Positions 213 to 57,771 of a stretch of DNA of 64,000 bases are shown here, in pieces. The stretch is from Kudoa neothunni. Its lineage: Eukaryota > Animalia > Cnidaria. Numbering within the stretch: position 1 is the first letter of the stretch; each line of letters opens with the position of its first letter. Both the position numbers and the translations under genes were made by a program. Where the stretch lies: NCBI GenBank assembly GCA_964304625.1, contig OZ199839.1, positions 5,710,311 through 5,774,310 on the forward strand, written 5' to 3'. The notes under the pieces are model-generated. The model was given only the letters and a program-made list of their open reading frames with translations. It searched no databases and was not told the origin of the DNA.

Positions 213-1057
213 TTAAATATTAATTCTATTCTAAAAAAGATTAATTTAATGGGTAATTGTTGTGGCTCGAAACATAAAATTAACAAACCCTTTTCAGTCC
301 AATCTTCAACAAGTGATATATAGATCCAGGCGTGTGAGAAAATGTTTTGATGAATTTCTCAGGTTCCAAAGGAATTGTGCGGTCGTTTGAGCGTGTACGA
401 CTGTATGCTATCATTAGCGTAGCTTTAAGCGCCTCTTTCATATCATATATTTTTTCGTAGTTTTCAGTATTGATCGCATGTAACCCAGTTTTTAGGACGT
501 TTTTTTCAAAGATAGACAACATTACACGAGTACTATTCTATAAAAATTAATAATTACTTGCAGTTTAACTTTTCAGTCACATAGCTAAGCGCCCTTTCAA
601 GATGTGAAATGCTTTTTGCAAGTAGGCTCCATCGGGTCAGATTTCGAGCAAAACGACAAGAATCATGTATGTATGTTCCAGTGGTGAAAAATATTTTTCT
701 ATGGTTTCTAACATCAAAAATAATAGAAGTAATCTAAAAATAATCAGGTATAAACAATAAACAAAAAAAATTTATGATTAAAAATACTGGGCATTTAAAC
801 ATATCAATTTTGAGATAAATCAATGAAGGATACACGTTTGCCACCGAATCCATATATTTTGATAACTCTGTGGTCTCAAATATATTCCTAAAATTTCACA
901 AAATTGCATTTTTTTAATACATTAGTTTATTTATGTGAAATAATTACAAATGACGGCAAAATATGATAACAAAATGACCAAAAGGATCTTTATTCATGAT
1001 TTCCCGGAACTCATTGTCACTTTGTATACTTCTGGAAATGGTAAAACGTTTGCTCAT
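213..1057 (-). CDS. Tandem paralog of the Trx-like/PUB N-terminal part of the PNGase gene; probably truncated or a pseudogene
   Basis: Spliced translation MSKRFTISRSIQSDNEFREIMNKDPFGHFVIIFCRHL|NIFETTELSKYMDSVANVYPSLIYLKIDMFKCP|ITSIIFDVRNHRKIFFTTGT...RALSY|NSTRVMLSIF...PGSIYHLLKIGLKR aligns exon-for-exon, with the same intron phases, to the gene at 4693-6966. The next exon either stops after NRINI* (213) or is degenerate with stops (~20-90). Confidence 0.7.
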
Positions 1058-4692: not shown

Positions 4693-6966
4693 TTAATAGG
4701 GACATCTGTTATATATGTGATTAAGTTGGACGGGGTTTGGTCTCGCAAAAATAATTCCAATATCTTCCTTCATTGACGACTCTAAATTGACCAAAACATC
4801 ACGGTTAGGCATCCGATCCTTTAACTACAGAAAGAGTCGCAGTTAAATATGCCTATTCGAATGCAACGTTAAACTCTTACGCGGTTGTTAAATCTGAATA
4901 GAATAATAGGAAGGATATTTTCGAAAAAGAAATCTCTGTTTGTTTTAACAGTGTTAGGATTTCGGGTGTAACGATAAGTGACTTCTTTGATCTCGTAATG
5001 AGTGAATGCAAGGACACATTTTAATTGTTTCCCCTGACAAACTTCATAGAGGAGAGGGCTATCGTATGCATTCTCGCAACAGTCAACGTGAATCCATCGT
5101 TTGAATTCAGGCGAATACACCTCACACCACATATGATCAACACAATCGAACAAGTAACGTGTTTCTAGACCGACTGATTGACAAATACATGTGAAAGCAA
5201 TTGACCATTCGCCACTTCGTCCAATTCTGGTTTCTATGGGGAGATTTGGTTAATAAGTTAAGACAGGTGTCTGTTGAGAGCATACGTAAAAGTTTTAGGG
5301 GATCCTTGTAACGAGGGAATCGTTCAACATTGGAGCATTTTTTACAAATGTAGATCTCAGTTGAATTGGCATTGTATTCCGCTTCCTGTGGAGAGGCGGG
5401 AACAATTTCGTGAGGCTCCATTGGAACTTTGCATAAATAGCAGGAAGGATCTTTGAACCATTCGAAAAAATGATCTAACCCACAATGAGGATTGGGGGAA
5501 AAAATGAAACAAACTTTTGAACCAATCGAGTAGAGCAACTATGAAACGATCAGTTTTGTCATATCTATAGTAACGGCTGTTGTGTAGAAGGATTTTTGCG
5601 TTCTGTTTGACCCATGCCATAGGGATTGTCTTGCGGGCGGCCGTTAGAATTGGTTGCGCTTGGAACTTATAAACGATATTATAAATTGATTTGATTCTCT
5701 CAACCAAACCCCTATATTTATTCTATGCGGCAATCACACAGTAAACTTTAAAAATATATTTTACGGTAAAATGGTTGAGTGTTTCGGTTACAGTGGATTT
5801 AAAGCTAGGGAAGGGATAAATGAAGACAGCCTGCCGAGGGCAGAATTTCATAGTATTATGATATTTGATTATCGTGTCCAGGCAATCAACATAAGACATT
5901 AGCATTGCTGGTGACTTTTCATAGGGAAATCTTAATACTGTTTCAGTCTAGATGGTTGAATTAAACTATTCATTTAATGTGTGTTTAAGTAAATATAGAG
6001 TGGCAATTTTATCTAATTAAATTAAATCGAATTAATTTACTAGTTCATTAAAGCTAGACCAATAATCTGTCAAGATTAATTTATCTGATTTGGCAATGAT
6101 ATATCGACAATAAAATTGTTGAATTTACAATTGTGATAGGTGAAATTGGAAAATTCACATAATACCTTTTGCATCCCACTCGCCAACAGAGTTTGAATAC
6201 ATCCATGTGTTTTTACATAGAACAGACAGAATTCGTTTGATACTAACGAGATGGAGCGATTATTCGGATAACTTGGGTCGTATTGTTTTGAAAGAAGTTT
6301 TATCAATGACTCTTTTATAGCATTAATTGAGTAGACACTTTTACTCCTCAACACGTGATTATATGTTCTATAGACGCCCTTGTTAAAAATTAACAACAAT
6401 GAGCGGGCCCTATTCTACACAGATTGTTAGTTATGAAATATTCATTTTTTCAGTACATATTCCATTGCCTTTCTTGAATGGATTTTAGTTTTTAAAACAA
6501 TTTCTCCTGGTATCAGCTCCTGTGTGATGTCAAAAATATCAATGACATGTGTTCCATTGGTGAATAAAATTTTCCTATCTGTCCCAGTTTCATAAGTAGT
6601 GCAAGCATGCTAAAGATACATCATTATTGAGGTGTAAATAAGTAAAATAATCGGAGATCGCGTAATCAAATACAGGACACCCATCGCTATCAATTTTGAG
6701 AAAAACCAACACGGGGTATCTATTTGACAAATCATCCATATATTTTGATAATTCGGTGGTTAAAATGCTTTTACTATAATAAAAAAATTAATAATCACCT
6801 ATATTAGTATATTTGTGGGAAATATAAAAATTTGGGATTACAATAAAGGGCAAAATTGCATGACATAAAATTCATATGGATTTTTTTGCAGTATTTCGCT
6901 GAGTTCGTCATCAGAAAATACATTTCTAGCGAGAGTTTCTCGTATATTTATGGAGGTTTCAGTCAT
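4693..6966 (-). CDS. NGLY1: Peptide:N-glycanase (NGLY1/PNG1)-like protein with degenerate N-terminal thioredoxin-like domain and PUB domain; catalytic Cys replaced by Ser
   Basis: Multi-exon. Transglutaminase-like core LLDWFKNHFFEW..PSCYLC...ICKKC..RFPRY..TRIGRSGEW..ETRYLFDCVDHMWCEVYSPEFKRWIHVDCCEN..PLLYE. PUB-like KLLSKQYDPSYPNNRSISLVSNEF...GCIQTLLASGMQK. Trx-like DDLSNRYPVLVFLKIDSDGCP. No PAW domain seen. Confidence 0.9.
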
Positions 6967-11553: not shown

Positions 11554-12649
11554 CTAATCAATTTCTACACAGTCCATACAGGTGGGTCGGTAAGGAATGG
11601 TGTATTCAGAAACCAACTTTGGGGTTGAATTATCGAATCCAACCATATTCCAAAATTTGACCACACCTTTCGAATCAACCGACACGATAATCAGGATGTT
11701 TTGAAGCATTTTTAGTTGTTTCACTCGAGTATCATGGGCAGACCATTCGTAGACAATACCATTGGAAGACGACACCAGAGAGATTGTGCCATCTCTACCA
11801 CCCACAAAACAATAATCATCCTTCATAAATTGACAAAAATTATGAATTATCATCCCATCCAAAACACATACATTAACCACACAAACACAAACGATTGGAT
11901 GATGAAATTTAAGATTGAAAGTTGATTTTTGAGTACTCTCAATCAAATTTGCGAAACTCAAATTATTCCCATTGTTTGAAACAACCAAATAACTGTTGCC
12001 TGATGGTAACCATTCAATATGGGTGACATTGTTGAAATCGGTTGTGTGAGCGATTATTTTTTGGGCGTAAAGGTCTAAAATCCTAAATCATATTCAATTT
12101 ATCATCATCATCATCATCATCATCATTAACAAACTCACTCAATTCGAGACTTTGTAGCTGAGGTGAGAATGAGTGAAATGCCGTTAAGAATAGGATGAGG
12201 GGAAAGTAGAACAATCGCACTGTTACAAACTTTATCGGGTAGAGTGTAAACAATCACCCATCTATTGGTATCCCAGATATCGAAAGAGCCATTGTGATCG
12301 ATCGCGCCTAACAAACAACTATCTAGTCTTATTAGCTTAATGTATTCTTTGGATTCGGATAAATGACCGATTTCATTATGTCGCTTGACATTGTATAGAC
12401 TATGTAGCAATATAGAATTTAGATTGTCACATTTAACCTACAAAATCCATCATACCACACAGTATCATCGGTACTGGAAGAAGCGAGACAGTTATTTCCA
12501 CAGAAAACCGCACTTCTAACACATCCTTGATGGTTTTTATTGGAGAATCGCACATTGATTTGATTGTTATTAAGTTGGTTGTGCGACACTTCAAATCCAT
12601 ATAAAACACCTTCGTAAGTGCCAACAACAACACTGTACATCGAATCCAT
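11554..12649 (-). CDS. PAK1IP1: PAK1IP1/Mak11-like WD40 ribosome biogenesis factor
   Basis: N-terminus VVVGTYEGVLYGF...NHQGCVRSAVFCGNNCLASSSTDDTV..LYNVKRHNEIGHL, and C-terminal AHDTRVKQL..IVSVDSKGVVKFW...RPTCM; short introns. Confidence 0.8.
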
Positions 12650-12995: not shown

Positions 12996-15360
12996 ATGAA
13001 GGGTGTTGGCCTAGAGAACTTTTCCAACAACTGCTATCTAAACAGTATCGTACAGATATTTTTGCATATACCCGAGATGGTTGAATACTTCAGTCAGGGT
13101 ATGGAGATTGGTCGGTTGAGGTTAACATGTTTATTAGATTCAATTTAGACTATAATCCAGATGAATTGTCTCCAAATGAAGATGACATCAAACAGGTCAG
13201 GGTTGTTGAAGCGTTTGTGGAACTGTACGATGCTGTTGTATCGAATTTGAAATCTGGACACACTTCTCCTTTCATTCTCAAGGTAATATTCGGCTAACAC
13301 CTCACACAATTGTTCAATTAACATTGAAAAGTCCGCTATGGGCAAAATAGATCCAACATTCGATGTGGATGAAGAGTGCGATGCTCAGGAATTCTTTTTA
13401 GCTTTTATCAACGCATTACAACAAGGTCTTAGTCGTAGGAAACAGCCCCACTCACAAACTAGCTCTAATGTCGATCTTTCGATTCTCTCCAACTACAAAC
13501 TTTATATTTGTCAACAACGACACACAGTAGTGGATCGATTGTTTTTGGGTGCTCTAGGCAACCATTTAACATGTTCAGGATGCAAAGATGTGAGTGTTGT
13601 TCCATCGAATTAGTACTAATGTATGCTGACACATGTAGGTAAGTTGTTCGTATGATATATTTTTCAATGTGGCGATTCCGCTGCCTCTCAATAAGAAGAA
13701 AATCCGGCTGGCACTGTATTCTAACGACATGAATCGAAAACCCATAATTGAGAGTGTGGAACTTAACATCTACACCGAAACTACCGTGTCTTCGTTGCTT
13801 CGATCCACCCATTCACTTATTCCGAAGAACGGTTGCACAAATCACAATTCTTCAGAGAATACCCTTACAAAGAATTGCGTGAAAAACCGTTCTCCTATTG
13901 GAATTGGCGGAATAGGCGGAACCAGTGGGAATACTGGAAAGAGTCCTAGTTTTTTTCTATTCACCCTTGGACTCAGTTATGTCAGGCTTGCCAGGCAGTG
14001 TGAATTTGTTTGCAACGTGGTCGACTATGACAACCGTTTGATTCTGGGCGCGGAATTTCCTCGAGGAGATGTTGGCAATTGTTTCCTAGTACGTCAGTAT
14101 ATCAACAACTTTGTTGACAATCAATTCACAACCGTGGAGGCGATGAGGAAACACAAAGATTTCAAGAAAAAATTCAAATCGTCCATAGTCAGTCGACTTA
14201 TAGATAAATGTTTCAACAACAATTCACGAGCTTATCATTCATTTGTACCACCGATTGGCAGTCATTACATAGGATTACCATTTTTGATTGCTATACCAAA
14301 CCATCTTCATCAAAATAAAACCCCCTTCTACGACTGGTTGTATCAGTGTTGTGTAAAATATTTGAACAATATCGACTACATTAGTAAAACAATCAATGTG
14401 TCTTTCTATCCGTTTGATTTGAATCATGATCCTCCGGAATTTAAAATTATTGCCACTTTGAAAGATATGACAAAAGTGATTGTGGATAGTTCGTTTGGAT
14501 TGGCCATGATGGAATTCACCATTGCGATCGATCTTATTTGGAATTCCCCCAATTCACCCGGCAGTCCCTCCTCCTACGCAAACGACACTACCACCAGCCA
14601 AGTTGCCTCATCCCTGCCGAGTTCCAGTGGCGAAAATGGACACACTAGTGGCTATGCCGTGGTGGTGCCAGAACGATCCAGCTCCTGCAGTCTTAATCCA
14701 AACAAAATTATCAGTTGTTCTAGTTTTAGCGACCCTGCCAGAATGTTCAAGATTCAAGGCAAAAACTCAGATCCTTATGACATTTTGGCTGATCTTCAAA
14801 TATTTCGATCCAGAAGCTTTGATTGTACCCTGGATGAATGTATCAATTTGTTTTTCAATGAAACTGTACTAATTCACAACCGCGAATGCTCAAAATGTAA
14901 CTATGTTGGTGATTCTGTGGGTGTGGTCAAGTTGGCTATCGCTCCCTCTATTCTAACCATTCAGTTGAAAAGATTTGATTATCAGAATGGCGGCAAAAAA
15001 ACCGATGTTTTAGTTGAGATACCAAACAAGTAATTACAACTTGTAGTAATAGATTTGAGATGTGGGTTTTTTTTAAATAAATTCTGTTCATGTTTTTATA
15101 GCATCCAAATCAACTCCAAACACATCGAACAGGCCAAATCTTCCATTCATTATAGACTTGTTGGTATGGTTTGCCATATTGGAACATTCTCTTTCGGACA
15201 CTACTTCACAATCATCGATGAGCTGGGCATGGCAGACCCCAGTCTGAACGCAGAAAGATGGATCCTCTTCGATGATGCTTCTGTAGAATATATAACTGAA
15301 GGGAAGTTCAACAAATTTAAATCTTGGGCTTATCTACTATTTTTTAAACGTGTAAACTAA
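12996..15360 (+). CDS. Ubiquitin-specific protease (peptidase C19) with split catalytic domain
   Basis: Cys box GLENFSNNCYLNSIVQ, ECDAQEFF, zinc-finger Cys pairs CSGC and CSKC, LTIQLKRFDY, His box VCHIGTFSFGHY, WILFDDASV, AYLLFFKR. Confidence 0.9.
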
Positions 15361-19712: not shown

Positions 19713-19916
19713 TTTTGTTGAACAATCTATTATTGACAAAAGTCGTGTGCTAAACACTTTTTTATCCAAATAACAATAAGATTGAAGAACATAAGAGAAT
19801 AGGTGTTGTTAGAGGCGTAATAACGACGAGAATTAGGGTTGAATCTGTTAGCTTTTGTTGTTCGAGGTGTGAAACTGTGTTGATTGTATGGTACGCTCGA
19901 GGTCACTATAGATGAG

Positions 19917-21992
19917 ATGTTAGATAGCAAATCACCAAAAAGTTCATCTAATGGTTTAATGGATAGATTAACCGGAATAAAGTTGACATACTTTGTGTTG
20001 TTTTTTGGATACGGAGCAACCCTCCCTTATTTGGCATTGTATTTTCGTCAAATAGGGCTTAATGCAAGTTACGTAGGAGCTATAGCTGGGTTGAGGCCTC
20101 TGGTTCAATTTGTAAGCTGTCCTTTGTGGGCAATAATAGCTGATAGATTTCATGTGAGAAGGATAGTCTTGAACATGTCGATTATTAGTTGGTTGTTGTT
20201 TACGGTTGTATTGTATGTGCCTCGGCCGAAACATTCCTACTGTATGGATTCGCCGATTTTTGATTCTTTGACCAAAAACACAACAAACAAAAATATCACT
20301 GACGTTGCAAAAATATGGCCGAAAATCCTAGCAAAAAATAACAACACCAGTAACGATCCATCCTCACTGGAAAAAATTGAAAGTGTTCCACTAAAGAAGT
20401 AATTTCATCCGTATTAACTTTAAATAATTATTTTAGCGGAACGTTACCCTTCCAAATAGAAGTATCATCAAAAAGAAGTGTTATGGGAAGTGTGAATTCG
20501 TTCCAATTTCGAAATCCTGAACATAATCACGTTTCACCTAGACATCACATTAAAGGAGGTAATCTAACAGAGGCTAATCAAACAGCAAATAATTTGTCGG
20601 ATTCGATGATGTATACAGCACCGTTGGAATTTTTGGCTAGCAATGATAGTTTGTCGCCAACCAAAGTAAACAACCAAAGCAATAATGTTGAAAATCTGAC
20701 CGAGGAATGTCCACTTGCTGAATTTAAAATGAAAACACCAAAAAAACAATTATTGGCAGTGTTTCGGGATGAAACCGAATGTATCCCATTGGTATTCTAT
20801 GAAAAAGAAGAAGTGTTTATAGTGTTTGTTATCCTCATTACATTGACAGCTGTTGGGGAGTTTTTTGAGGCGCCTGCGGTATCGTTGCTGGATGTAGCTA
20901 TACTCGAATGTTTGGAGGATCGCAAAGAGATGTATGGTCAAACTCGGCTCTATGGTAGTCTCGGTTTCGGAATATCTTCATTTATTGTTGGGGTTACACT
21001 TGATTACTTCCACATCACAATATGTAACGAGCAGGTTACTGATTTTATGATTACGTTGTACTTTTTTGTGGGATCCATGATCCTGGCAATTTTAATATCG
21101 TTGCTGTGTGTCAAATTTGGCGATGATACATCATTGATGAGTGAATTTACCAGAAAAGAAAGAAAAAATATTTCAGAAAATAAACCAATCCAGCCCTGCT
21201 CGATTTGTCAAAACAGCAGTGATGATCCAGAAAAACCTTCACAAATAATCATCGATTTGGAATCAATAGATGAGGATTTGACAAAAAGCAAGAAACTCGC
21301 ATTAAAAAAAAACACCCAAAACCTCAGTGAAATCATCGCTATATTCAAACAATCTGAATATCAATTCAATATTCTGGTGTCCCTATTCTTAGGGTTTAGC
21401 CATGGAAGTATAATGAATTTTATCAATTGGTTCCTGGAGGATCTTGGTGCTAGTCGACTTATGATGGGATCGGCTACTGTGATACGAGATTTTGCTGTGG
21501 TTTTTGGGTTCTACATCTCTCCATATGTTCTTAGTGTACTCAGCCAAATGCAAGTTATCACTTGGACATTTTGTGTGTATATTTTCAGCTACTTCTGCTA
21601 TTCATTGATCACCTACCCGTGGTATGCTGTTCCTGTGGAATGCATTCAAGGTCTAGCCTATGCTATTATGTGGTCTTCTTGTATCACTTACTTTGGCGGC
21701 ACCGTATCCAAAGAGAATAGTGCCACAATGCAGGGTATTTATTTAATTGGGTTTGGATGGGAATTTTCCCACCGAACATATTCCTTAATATCCTATATCG
21801 TTTATAGGAGTCATTCAAGGAGTTTATTGGGGATTAGGCACTGGTTCAGGAGCAATTATTGGTGGAATCAGTGTTTTCAAGTATGGCTGCTCAAAATCGT
21901 TTCAACTAGGTGGCTACATCACCTGCTTCGCCATGTTATTCTTCGGATTAATCTATTATTTTTTTGTTCGAAAGAATGTAGATAAGCGATAA
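19917..21992 (+). CDS. MFSD6: Major facilitator superfamily protein MFSD6-like
   Basis: KLTYFVLFFGYGATLPYLALYFRQIGLNA..PLWAIIADRF, YGQTRLYGSLGFG, FINWFLEDLGAS, TMQGVIQGVYWGLGTGSGAIIGG; introns at ~20399-20436 and ~21735-21808. Confidence 0.9.
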
Positions 21993-49629: not shown

Positions 49630-50680
49630 ATGAGAACGGGGAAAAGATACTTATTAGTGGCTTTGATAGTTGTCGCATCAATAACGTTATTGGTGGTTAT
49701 GTGTGAATTGTACAATCAACCAGAATCAACGATCAACTCGGAACAGCTAATAACTGAAACTGTGGAACATTTACGTCAAGCAGGGAAATTAATTATGAAT
49801 ATTAAATCTTCTTCAAGTTATCATGTGATTTTTTTATGTTAATCAATAACAACAATCTAATAGTTTATTTGGTTGAAATCTATAGGAATATTCAAAAGGG
49901 AAAACCAAAGAGGGCTACAACGACTTGGTTACAGTGGCCGATATCACATCCAACCAGCTGATTAAAAAATTCTTTTCCTTACATTATCCCAAAATAAAGC
50001 TGCTCACCGAAGAAGACTACGAAAAAGACAAAATATACACAAAAAGCCTCAAAAACGCTATCGATAACACCCCCATTGTATCCAATGAAATCGACGAATC
50101 ATCGCTAATAGCCATCATTGACCCATTGGATGCCACTCAGGAATACACCGAGGGACTGTATCAATACACCTCGATTATGGTGTGTTTTCTACTGAACAAC
50201 CGCCCACTAATTGGCATAACATATTTCCCATCGATAGATCAAGCCTTTTGGGTGCACAACCAAAACAAAGACTCTGGCAACTTTGATAAGGTTTCTGAGA
50301 TTTTCAAAGTGCAACGAAACACATCTGCTATCAATGTGATAGTTTCAAGATCACATACGGGAAATATTTCCAAATGGATATCCCAAATTGCAAATCACCG
50401 ACACAATGTGCATGTTATTAAAGCTGGAGGTGCTGGTTATAAATCAGTTATGGTAGCTGGGAATGCAGCTGATATCTATCTTCACGCTACCGCCATTAAA
50501 ATATGGGATGTTTGTAATGGGTTGGTTTTCGGAGAGCACTTTCCAAACCTGAAAGCCTACGATACCACGCTAAATGATATCAATCTCGAAATCGATCACC
50601 CGGTGCTACATAAAGGATTCATTCTGGTCAATAACACATCGCTCCTTAGTTTCCTCTTAGAAAATAAACAACCTAATTAG
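49630..50680 (+). CDS. IMPAD1: Golgi 3'-phosphoadenosine 5'-phosphate phosphatase (IMPAD1/BPNT2)
   Basis: N-terminal TM anchor; KGKTKEG..VTVAD; IIDPLDATQEYTEGL; AGGAGYK; IYLHATAIKIWDVC; one intron. Confidence 0.92.
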
Positions 50681-54039: not shown

Positions 54040-55892
54040 TTTCTGAATTTAGTTAAGGCAAAATTTTAATAATTGAACAATTTTTATATAAAAATAATCA
54101 AATGCTTGTGTACACTTAGAAAATCGTCTATTTTATATTTTGATAACTGCTGTATCATATTGATTATTTTATGACAAATATAACAGTTTATAATTTTTGT
54201 TAGAAGATAATGGACACATTGAAACAACAACTTTCAAAATTAAATAATATTTTAATTTTTCATGATCGCAATTTCAAACAAATTCAGTCATATAACTTTA
54301 TGCGGTAAATATAAATTTCCGAAAAAAAATTGAAAACTAAAAATCATATTTTAGAATAATAAATCGCAATAAGATTTACATTTCATCGATTGGATATGAA
54401 CAAATTGATTTGCTCAGTTTCTGAAATGTAACACCATTATAATGAGCACTTAAACTATCATTTTGGTCAAATAATTATCTTAAGAATAATTTAAGTGATT
54501 TAATATAACTAATATGTTAAAATATTTGACAAATAATGAAATTGACAAGTTCCTTATTTATTTATTTAATTAATTAATTAAATAAATAATAAGAATCGAG
54601 CAAAGATTAGCGACAACAAAGATGCAAAAAGGGTTGTTTTTTAGGTGTCACAGGCCACAGTATTTATAATTACAATTTTTTCAATGGAATAGGTATATAT
54701 TTACAGATGATGACAATAATGGTTTATTAGATAACCCACAAGAATAATTTCTGAATAACATTTTTAAATTAATATTTGAACATGTTTAAATATTAATGAA
54801 ATATTATGAAACTACGATAAATTATATTATAACAATAATCTTACACAAAATACATTACAATTGTGCGTACAATAAATTTCATTAAAACGGCACTATTTCG
54901 AATTATTGAATGTGTATTCTATTGTCATAAATTACTAAAATTGTAATTAATCTGCTTTTAGGTGGATAGAAATCACGACAATATTTTAAAATTATTTTGG
55001 ATGAAATATTTAGACGTTGAGCTCCAATAAGGCGAAACATTTGCTCTCGCTCGTTTAAAAGTTAAATTAACATTAAGCACGAAAGCGTTGATATACTTTC
55101 GCGCCCCTTCAATTGCCGGAAAATGAATAATGAATCAGCGAAGAATATAATTATGTCTCAAATTTAAAGGACAAACTAAAATCAAGTTCACTAGAATATT
55201 AGTAAAATCTCCATCTCATTATCATCAGATCCACTAGAAGTTGGCTTTCGATAGCTAGAATGAGTGGAATAAATTATTTAGTTAGCATTGCTATCACAAT
55301 AAATGGTGGAAATTTCATAAAATTCATACTTAAGGTTTTGTCCGCATATTTAGGTAAATTTATGTGTCATTGTGAATGATCATGATCTCGATTATATGTT
55401 TTCCCTATTTGTTCAATATGTCGCCGACTTAGTTCAACCAAACTCAACTATTCATTTCTAAAAATATCTTGTTATTGTTGAAAGCAATAAAACCCTGGGA
55501 TAAATTGACCCCAAAAGCACCAACTGTATATTTTGTTTGTATATCGTGGTTTATTGTACTTTTTCAAATTTTTTCTCCACAACTTTAAATATTATATTTA
55601 TTATGAAAATATTTCAATAGATATCACGTTTCTTAAATGCTTCTATGCATAGAAAACTCATAATACGGTAAAAGCTCGGAGGTCGATTTTGCCCAGAAAC
55701 GCTCGCTCAGATTCAGATGGCTGGCATTCGCGTGTGAAAGTGGGAAGTAAAATAATTTTAATGGATTTTCAACGGAAACTGATTGAAACGCTTTTCTTTT
55801 GTTTGTAATAAAAAAATTCTCACTGCAATTCAAAAAAAGGTTTCGAAGTAACTCGAATAAATTTAGAAGAAAGTGAACTATAATAGCGGAAT

Positions 55893-57771
55893 TTAAGATT
55901 TAATGAAATTTGCCACATAGGTTTGAATAAGTTGTTTGAGGGAAGCTTCGGTGTCTTTCGAAATATGGCCTTCATTTTTAATTTTCTAAAAACCATTAAA
56001 AATAAACGGATAACCCAACCAACTAGGAATACAGTAATAATATCTTTTCCAGCCGATCTCAAATGTTTCACAAATCCCTTCTCAAAGTTGGTGATTTCGG
56101 AAGGATCAACCGAATCGAGAAGACCCTTTACTCCACCATACAATATGCACACTTGTTCAGCATCATCGATAGGCACATATTGTCCTTGTTTGAGTAGTTC
56201 GGTCAAACGTTGACCTCGTTTAAGAAGTGACTGAGTTGCGGCATCCAAATCGGATCCGAACTGAGCGAAGGCGGCAAATTCTCTGTACTGAGCCAGTTCC
56301 AACTTCATACTACCAGCGACTTGTTTCATGGCTTTAGTTTGAGCGGCGGAACCCACACGACTCACCGACAACCCGACATTGATAGCAGGTCGAATACCTT
56401 TGTAAAAGAGTTCTGTTTCAAGGAAAATTTGGCCGTCAGTAATCGAAATCACATTGGTGGGGATGTAGGCGGATACATCACCAGCCTGAGTTTCGATGAT
56501 TGGCAGTGCAGTTAACGAACCACCTTTGAAGGTTTCACTCAGTTTGGCTGCCCTCTCCAACAATCTTGAGTGCAAATAGAAAACATCGCCAGGATAGGCT
56601 TCTCTTCCGGGTGGTCTTCTTAACAACAGTGACATTTGACGATAGGCAACTGCCTGTTTGGAAAGATCATCGTAGATAATCAGTGCATGTTTGCCGTTGT
56701 CTCTGAAAAATTCACCCATAGCACATCCTGAATAAGGCGCCAGATATTGAAGTGGTGCAGCATCAGACGCGGTGGCACTTACCACAATTGTGTAATCCAT
56801 AGCGCCAGAATCAGTCAAACGCTTCACTAATTGAGCTACTGTGCTTCTTTTTTGGCCAATCGCCACATAAATACAGTAGAGTTTTTTGCTGTCATCCACC
56901 GAATCATTGAAACGTTTTTGGTTGATAATTGTATCCACAGCGAGGGCAGTTTTACCGGTTTGACGATCTCCAATGATCAATTCACGCTGGCCTCTGCCAA
57001 TCGGCACCAAACTGTCCACAGCTTTGATTCCTGTCAACATGGGATCTCTCACAGATGCTCGAGGTATAATACCGGGAGCTTTTACATGAACTCGGGCTCT
57101 TTTCTGTGACACCACTGGACCAGCACCATCAATCGGATTGCCCAATGCATCCACCACACGACCCAACAATCCATCACCAACAGGCACATCAACAATAGCA
57201 CCTGTTCTTTTGACAAGATCGCCTTCTTTGATCAATTTGTCGTTACCGAAAACCACTACTCCCACATTGTCTGGTTCCAAGTTGAGTGCCATACCCTATT
57301 AACAAAATTAAAGTCAAACACAAAGCAACAACCAATCACAATCAATGTTTTTCTAAGAGATGAGTCTCACTTTTAGTCCCGAAGCAAATTCAACCATTTC
57401 TTCCGCTTGCACATTTCTCAGCCCATACACACGAGCAATACCATCACCAACCGATAAAACTGTTCCACTTTCTTCGAAATCGGTTCCCATCGAATACCCG
57501 GAAATTTTGGCGTCCAATATAGTAGATATTTCCGAGTGCACTAATGGTTACAGTTAAATATTCAGCTCGACGTTTCGATATATCCAACAGTTACCATCAA
57601 CTTTACGGGTTTTAGTCAAATTCCTCAATCCAAGCAACCCCAACGCTGAAATGCCGCTAACTTTTTTCAAATTCTAATAGATTGAGTTCCATACACAATA
57701 ACCACATCACTTATTACTGTGGTTGTATGAGAGAGTTGGGAAGACTTGGCTCGAGATAACGTCCTCAGCAT
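55893..57771 (-). CDS. ATP5F1A: Mitochondrial ATP synthase F1 subunit alpha
   Basis: Transit peptide MLRTLSRAK; [10 protein letters not shown]; P-loop GDRQTGKT; [22 protein letters not shown]; spliced C-terminus [30 protein letters not shown]. Confidence 0.97.

Follow-up and report, generated by a model that had tools for sequence, protein, structure and literature searches.

A PNGase (NGLY1) paralog with serine at the catalytic cysteine site in Kudoa neothunni, a candidate maintained pseudoenzyme

Gene A and its surroundings

The stretch of Kudoa neothunni DNA analysed here (the window, 64,000 nucleotides) carries on its minus strand, at positions 4693-6966, a gene that is a cytosolic PNGase/NGLY1 by homology, with a Png1/Ngly1-like transglutaminase core and two zinc CxxC pairs. 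This gene, which we call gene A, comprises nine exons separated by GT-AG introns of 40-218 nt, and its 563 codons contain no stop, in agreement with the initial annotation, which had described a reading frame intact in all exons. The exon joins are those predicted from the four paralogs of the family described below, in which all eight intron positions and phases are identical; gene A is presumably spliced in this way and expressed. Each exon was searched against databases separately, while the joined, spliced model was used in local comparisons. The features of gene A, in the order of transcription, are as follows.

6842-6966, minus: exon 1; ATG, beginning of a thioredoxin-like (Trx) fold, without signal peptide
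6674-6773, minus: exon 2; Trx fold, in which the WCGPC position reads FKSILT, formed across intron 1
6457-6609, minus: exon 3; end of the Trx fold, where the MPTF loop has likewise lost its conserved Pro
6166-6414, minus: exon 4; first part of the PUB domain, with the equivalents of N41, K50, Y51, R55 and N58 substituted
5765-5947, minus: exon 5; end of the PUB domain, including a KSPxMLxxYxDxL segment conserved among paralogs, then a linker; 5791 could serve as an alternative in-frame donor
5515-5722, minus: exon 6; N-terminal helices of the PNGase core, with LLDWFK at the end
5286-5474, minus: exon 7; zinc-binding region, CxxC at 5442-5431 and 5346-5335 (residues 351-354 and 383-386), both intact
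4881-5233, minus: exon 8; transglutaminase-like catalytic core (Pfam PF01841 and PF03835; PDB PNGases, E 6.5e-29)
5214-5216, minus: Ser409 (AGT), at the catalytic Cys site (C309 in primate numbering, yeast C191)
5133-5135, minus: catalytic His436, retained
5082-5084, minus: catalytic Asp453, retained
5034-5039, minus: Cys468-Gln469, in place of the invariant Gly-Trp (G368, W369)
4693-4824, minus: exon 9; last core helix and stop, without the RxSGSxxWRxxRGE motif and with no PAW domain after it

The two N-terminal folds, which the initial annotation had recognised as thioredoxin-like and PUB-like, went undetected by Pfam on single exons, and emerge from profile comparison (hhalign) with values above those of shuffled controls: 97.5% and E 7e-12 for the Trx fold, 94.4% and E 9e-8 for the PUB domain. 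A second PUB domain was considered and rejected, as exons 4 and 5 together form one. The replacement of WCGPC by FKSILT and the want of a PAW domain downstream of the core had likewise been read correctly, and the protein has neither a signal peptide nor a membrane segment. Neighbouring genes in the window are ordinary, encoding a WD40 protein (11554-11988, minus), a ubiquitin hydrolase (13338-15033, plus), an MFS transporter (19884-21985, plus), an inositol monophosphatase family protein (49925-50680, plus) and ATP synthase alpha (55820-57292, minus).

Four paralogs and the losses they have in common

The assembly (G000) amounts to 40.26 Mb in 4 contigs, gene A lying on one of 12.04 Mb; the assembly published for Kudoa neothunni, obtained from yellowfin tuna, is given as 40.2 Mb with an N50 of 12.0 Mb, three chromosomes and introns of ~49 bp (PMC12239612). 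Kudoa sp. trachurus and K. iwatai (GCA_001407235.2) have a conserved order of genes (PMC12239612). Searching the genome with each of two different exons returns exactly four PNGase copies (A, B, C and D), all with intact frames and the eight common intron positions and phases, at 35-41% pairwise identity (39-41% between gene A and the three others).

Window 289-1057, minus: paralog B, exons 1-4; the gene runs past the left window edge (G000:C2:5708873-5711367)
L006:3390-5734 (G000:C2:5684389-5686733), minus: paralog C; triad intact, Gly-Trp and C-terminal motif lost
L007:1010-4817 (G000:C3:3322509-3326316), plus: paralog D; intact, 544 aa, on another chromosome than A-C

Paralog B starts 3.6 kb downstream of gene A on the same strand, in tandem, and provides the GRCGEW copy whose existence elsewhere in the genome the initial annotation had raised; it retains GRCGEW, His, Asp, Gly-Trp and the C-terminal RxSGSxxWRxxRGE motif, and is alone among the four in keeping all these core motifs of an active PNGase. 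A weak PAW match behind it is explained by the start of that Pfam model, which covers the C-terminal motif, and no further PAW exon was found there. Paralog C, ~22 kb beyond B, may have an altered substrate. The interval between C and B also holds a 468-aa intronless ORF (L008:2266-3672, minus) with mucin-like Thr/Asp/Ser/Lys tandem repeats and a C-terminal membrane segment, as well as decayed remnants of Helitron and piggyBac-like elements (L008:6500-9450; L009:3050-3741). In paralog D, whose intron 4 extends to 1.8 kb, the motif reads GNRKEF, Cys has become Arg, His has become Phe and four neighbours have changed; judged from its sequence, it is a clearer pseudoenzyme than gene A. The family is thus graded, from B with all motifs, through C with the triad only and A with Cys-to-Ser, to D with both Cys and His lost.

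Phylogenetically the four copies form a single clade, the internal order of which, including any sister relation of A and D, is left undecided; an AU test neither showed nor rejected that A and D owe their missing Cys to one shared loss. In a quick tree the clade sits on a very long stem and does not join the cnidarian NGLY1 group, and it is architecture and organism that suggest an origin from a cnidarian NGLY1. In sea anemones, corals, jellyfish and hydrozoans, NGLY1 ordinarily has the order Trx-PUB-core-PAW with an intact CxxC (WCGPC), and consequently the Trx-PUB fusion of gene A is an inherited trait. The NGLY1 of Nematostella (XP_048580323), Actinia, Oculina, Montipora, Clytia, Rhopilema and Hydractinia resemble gene A in the order of Trx, PUB and transglutaminase core and in the two zinc CxxC, with ~30% identity over residues 52-526, but differ in keeping the Trx CxxC, the catalytic Cys, the p97 pocket and PAW. 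P0227 (ENA ERZ26222911), a hydrozoan-like NGLY1 of Trx-PUB-core-PAW layout, has a Trx fold without CxxC, as has gene A. The thioredoxin domain fused to the N-terminus of Caenorhabditis elegans PNG-1 is a further likeness (PMC9102325), although there the Trx is active, PAW is present, PUB is absent and the triad is intact. No myxozoan orthologue was recognisable among the best 150 of 2013 and the best 120 of 2277 matches listed by a HMMER search of 50% representatives and two further searches seeded with Nematostella NGLY1.

The CxxC, the MPTF-loop Pro and PAW are missing from all four paralogs, triad-intact copies included, which places the loss of CxxC and PAW before the duplications. The initial annotation had called gene A doubly inactivated; both losses are real, but that of the CxxC belongs to the whole family and is not specific to this copy.

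The PUB domain has changed in a similar manner. Tyr51 and Arg55 line the PUB pocket for p97 (PMC4017264); these positions, together with N41, K50 and N58, are substituted in 4/4 paralogs, Asn and Ser standing at the Tyr51 and Arg55 positions of gene A. This bears on one of two roles offered in the initial annotation, a glycoprotein trap or p97 adaptor, that is, a protein that would hold N-glycosylated clients, leave them uncut and use its PUB domain to dock on the p97 tail. The fold itself is present, p97 of the same genome retains its DDLYD terminus, and STT3 was found, from which it follows that N-glycans are probably made. Against this stand the pocket substitutions and, in gene A, the missing PAW, the missing invariant Trp369 and the missing C-terminal motif; Trp369 (yeast Trp251) and the C-terminal tail of PNGase presumably serve glycan binding. 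We consider the trap or adaptor improbable. Searches of the genome for Rad23, ENGase and DDI2 came back blank or matched only ubiquitin and retrotransposon proteases; for Rad23 and ENGase, neither of which was detected, the fast evolution of the genome and its short exons qualify the result.

The catalytic site

The minus-strand codon at 5216-5214 is AGT, giving Ser within GRSGEW; in the alignment with PNGase structures from mouse (2f4m) and yeast (1x3w/3esw) this Ser falls on the Cys of GRCGEW, with His and Asp in place. The initial annotation is therefore upheld as to the substitution, as well as to the retained His, Asp and both zinc CxxC pairs and the CQGK at 5039-5028. Among the best 150 database homologues, a set of best-scoring sequences and hence biased to conserved proteins, Cys occupies the catalytic site in 149/149 homologues having a residue there (from 151 matched stretches), and the Gly and Trp corresponding to G368 and W369 are present in 150/150.

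Read contigs agree with the assembly across the codon, those of run X1 over the whole stretch and those of run X2 over 5091-5347, with no differing letter; no RNA run was found to contain the stretch. All derive from a single sample at a depth of ~7, probably the assembly's own source, so that a slip in assembly is unlikely while the agreement speaks for one individual. Low depth and a single sample are what would favour an artefact, either a wrong letter in this codon or the false joining of another gene's exons at the N-terminus. However, the contigs of two runs have identical letters, the exon chain and its phases are common to four paralogs, and Nematostella NGLY1 aligns, without change of order, through Trx, PUB and core; an artefact is scarcely credible.

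In primate numbering the core changes of gene A are C309S, G368C, W369Q, Y375C and D386E, with the C-terminal motif lost, some of these sites being altered in paralog C or D as well. The equivalents of H336, D353, D335, W338, H351 and E356 are kept, several of which D has lost, as are all four zinc cysteines and the buried Trp residues; the losses fall on substrate-side motifs. Measured against the features of an active PNGase, gene A lacks a complete Cys-His-Asp triad, Gly-Trp and RxSGSxxWRxxRGE. Since yeast PNGase requires its Cys, C191A being inactive (PMC2866665), gene A is predicted to be inactive too.

Serine is nonetheless the most conservative substitute for cysteine, and the H336, D353, D335, W338, H351 and E356 equivalents are all in place. 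It might be argued that gene A is an active Ser-His-Asp hydrolase on the PNGase fold, turned to a substrate other than an N-glycopeptide as one of four specialised paralogs. In enzymes of the papain and transglutaminase folds, exchanging Cys for Ser usually leaves hardly any activity, Ser is found in 0/149 of the best-scoring homologues, and AGT, a single T-to-A transversion from TGT, is the nearest Ser codon, which makes a selective explanation unneeded. The Ser-nucleophile reading is without positive support, and we regard it as very improbable.

Selection and the probable maintenance of a dead copy

A dN/dS near 1 in an untranscribed gene had been named in the initial annotation as the outcome that would tell against a maintained protein. 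What a codon model returns for the branch of gene A is an omega of 0.40, with omega=1 rejected (p=5e-4), next to 0.45 for B, 0.31 for C and 0.19 for D; these values are rough, coming from four sequences with high synonymous divergence. For the core only, omega on branch A is 0.44 and omega=1 is not rejected (p=0.09), in what is a weak test. Conservation points the same way: of 44 core sites at least 95% invariant elsewhere, A keeps 39, B 41, C 37 and D 32, as against the 23-50% that should survive under neutrality. Had branch A been neutral, 31-72 stops should have accumulated; it has none, which bounds the neutral period of the gene at ~0.022 substitutions per site, or roughly 3-7% of the branch. 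Gene A has been constrained through nearly all its history. This is a branch average that includes any time when gene A may have been active and, as Ser is one transversion from TGT, the loss of Cys cannot be dated.

The same data must be weighed for the possibility that gene A is a recently dead duplicate, which worked as an enzyme with an altered substrate site, much as C may do, until one T-to-A change made it a null allele or young pseudogene. In favour of such a history are the single mutational step between AGT and TGT, the untouched His, Asp and triad surroundings, and paralog C, which holds the triad although Gly-Trp and the C-terminal motif have gone; moreover only a single sample is represented, and genome-wide selection is modestly weaker in Kudoa (PMC12239612). 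However, the frame and splice sites are intact, the neutral period is confined to the small fraction of the branch given above, and a second paralog, D, likewise lost its Cys and remained constrained. A recent death is rather unlikely, though it deserves to be taken seriously. The omega of 0.19 in D indicates that a copy of this family may be dead and yet remain constrained.

The reading we prefer, and hold to be somewhat probable, is that gene A is a catalytically dead PNGase (NGLY1) paralog maintained by selection, as the intact frame, the omega of 0.40 and the retention of zinc and fold residues would imply. Of the proposals in the initial annotation, the maintained pseudoenzyme thus finds favour, while the trap or adaptor role attached to it is opposed by the residue losses in the pocket and the substrate-side motifs. 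The history we propose begins with a single cnidarian Trx-PUB-core-PAW gene; on the way to this parasite, PAW, the p97 pocket and the CxxC of the Trx fold would have gone, and the gene would then have expanded to four copies. Paralog B most likely carries on deglycosylation. Gene A has lost the nucleophilic Cys together with Gly-Trp and the C-terminal motif, but has kept the zinc-stabilised fold. Its most likely role would be in the cytosol, as a binding protein or scaffold serving quality control at the proteasome, neither gripping glycans nor docking on the p97 tail. What it holds might be an unfolded client or else a partner, for which Rad23, ubiquitin and an active paralog are speculative choices. 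The KSPxMLxxYxDxL segment at the end of PUB (window 5897-5938 and its equivalents), which is nearly invariant in A-D and variable in other NGLY1, is a candidate for a new binding surface.

Inactive PNGases are already known, and gene A would be a variation on that pattern. Neurospora crassa PNG-1 and related PNGases of filamentous fungi have natural substitutions in the triad, do not deglycosylate and have a non-enzymatic role (PMC2866665, PMC9102325). The parallel drawn in the initial annotation applies in that these are natural triad substitutions, but in Neurospora both Cys and His are changed and the orthologue itself is dead, whereas in Kudoa only the Cys of gene A has gone and the presumably dead paralog stands beside triad-intact ones. 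A closer arrangement is seen in parabasalids, Trichomonas among them, in which a second, dead PNGase-fold paralog accompanies an active one (PMC6222260), and the inactive transglutaminase domain of Rad4/XPC is another dead relative of the fold. Both of these differ in reflecting ancient duplication, while A-D are one lineage-specific clade without DNA-binding domains. A literature search returned no Cys-to-Ser PNGase, no graded family of four copies in a myxozoan, and nothing on myxozoan PNGases or the cnidarian Trx-PUB form.

The value of the case is limited, as dead PNGases are known, the organism is difficult to handle and the Ser may be recent. Non-enzymatic roles of NGLY1 have, however, been reported in fungi and flies, and the graded set A-D offers a natural comparison in which catalytic and binding functions could be told apart. 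Four PNGases have been retained although the genus Kudoa has shed many genes. Among other features of the genome, the sole match to SSU rRNA, obtained with a stricter search filter, is a 3' fragment with AT-rich flanks (L011; G000:C2:5426127-5426748), and a minicollagen-like protein and several nematogalectin-like proteins, recognised by eye, are encoded.
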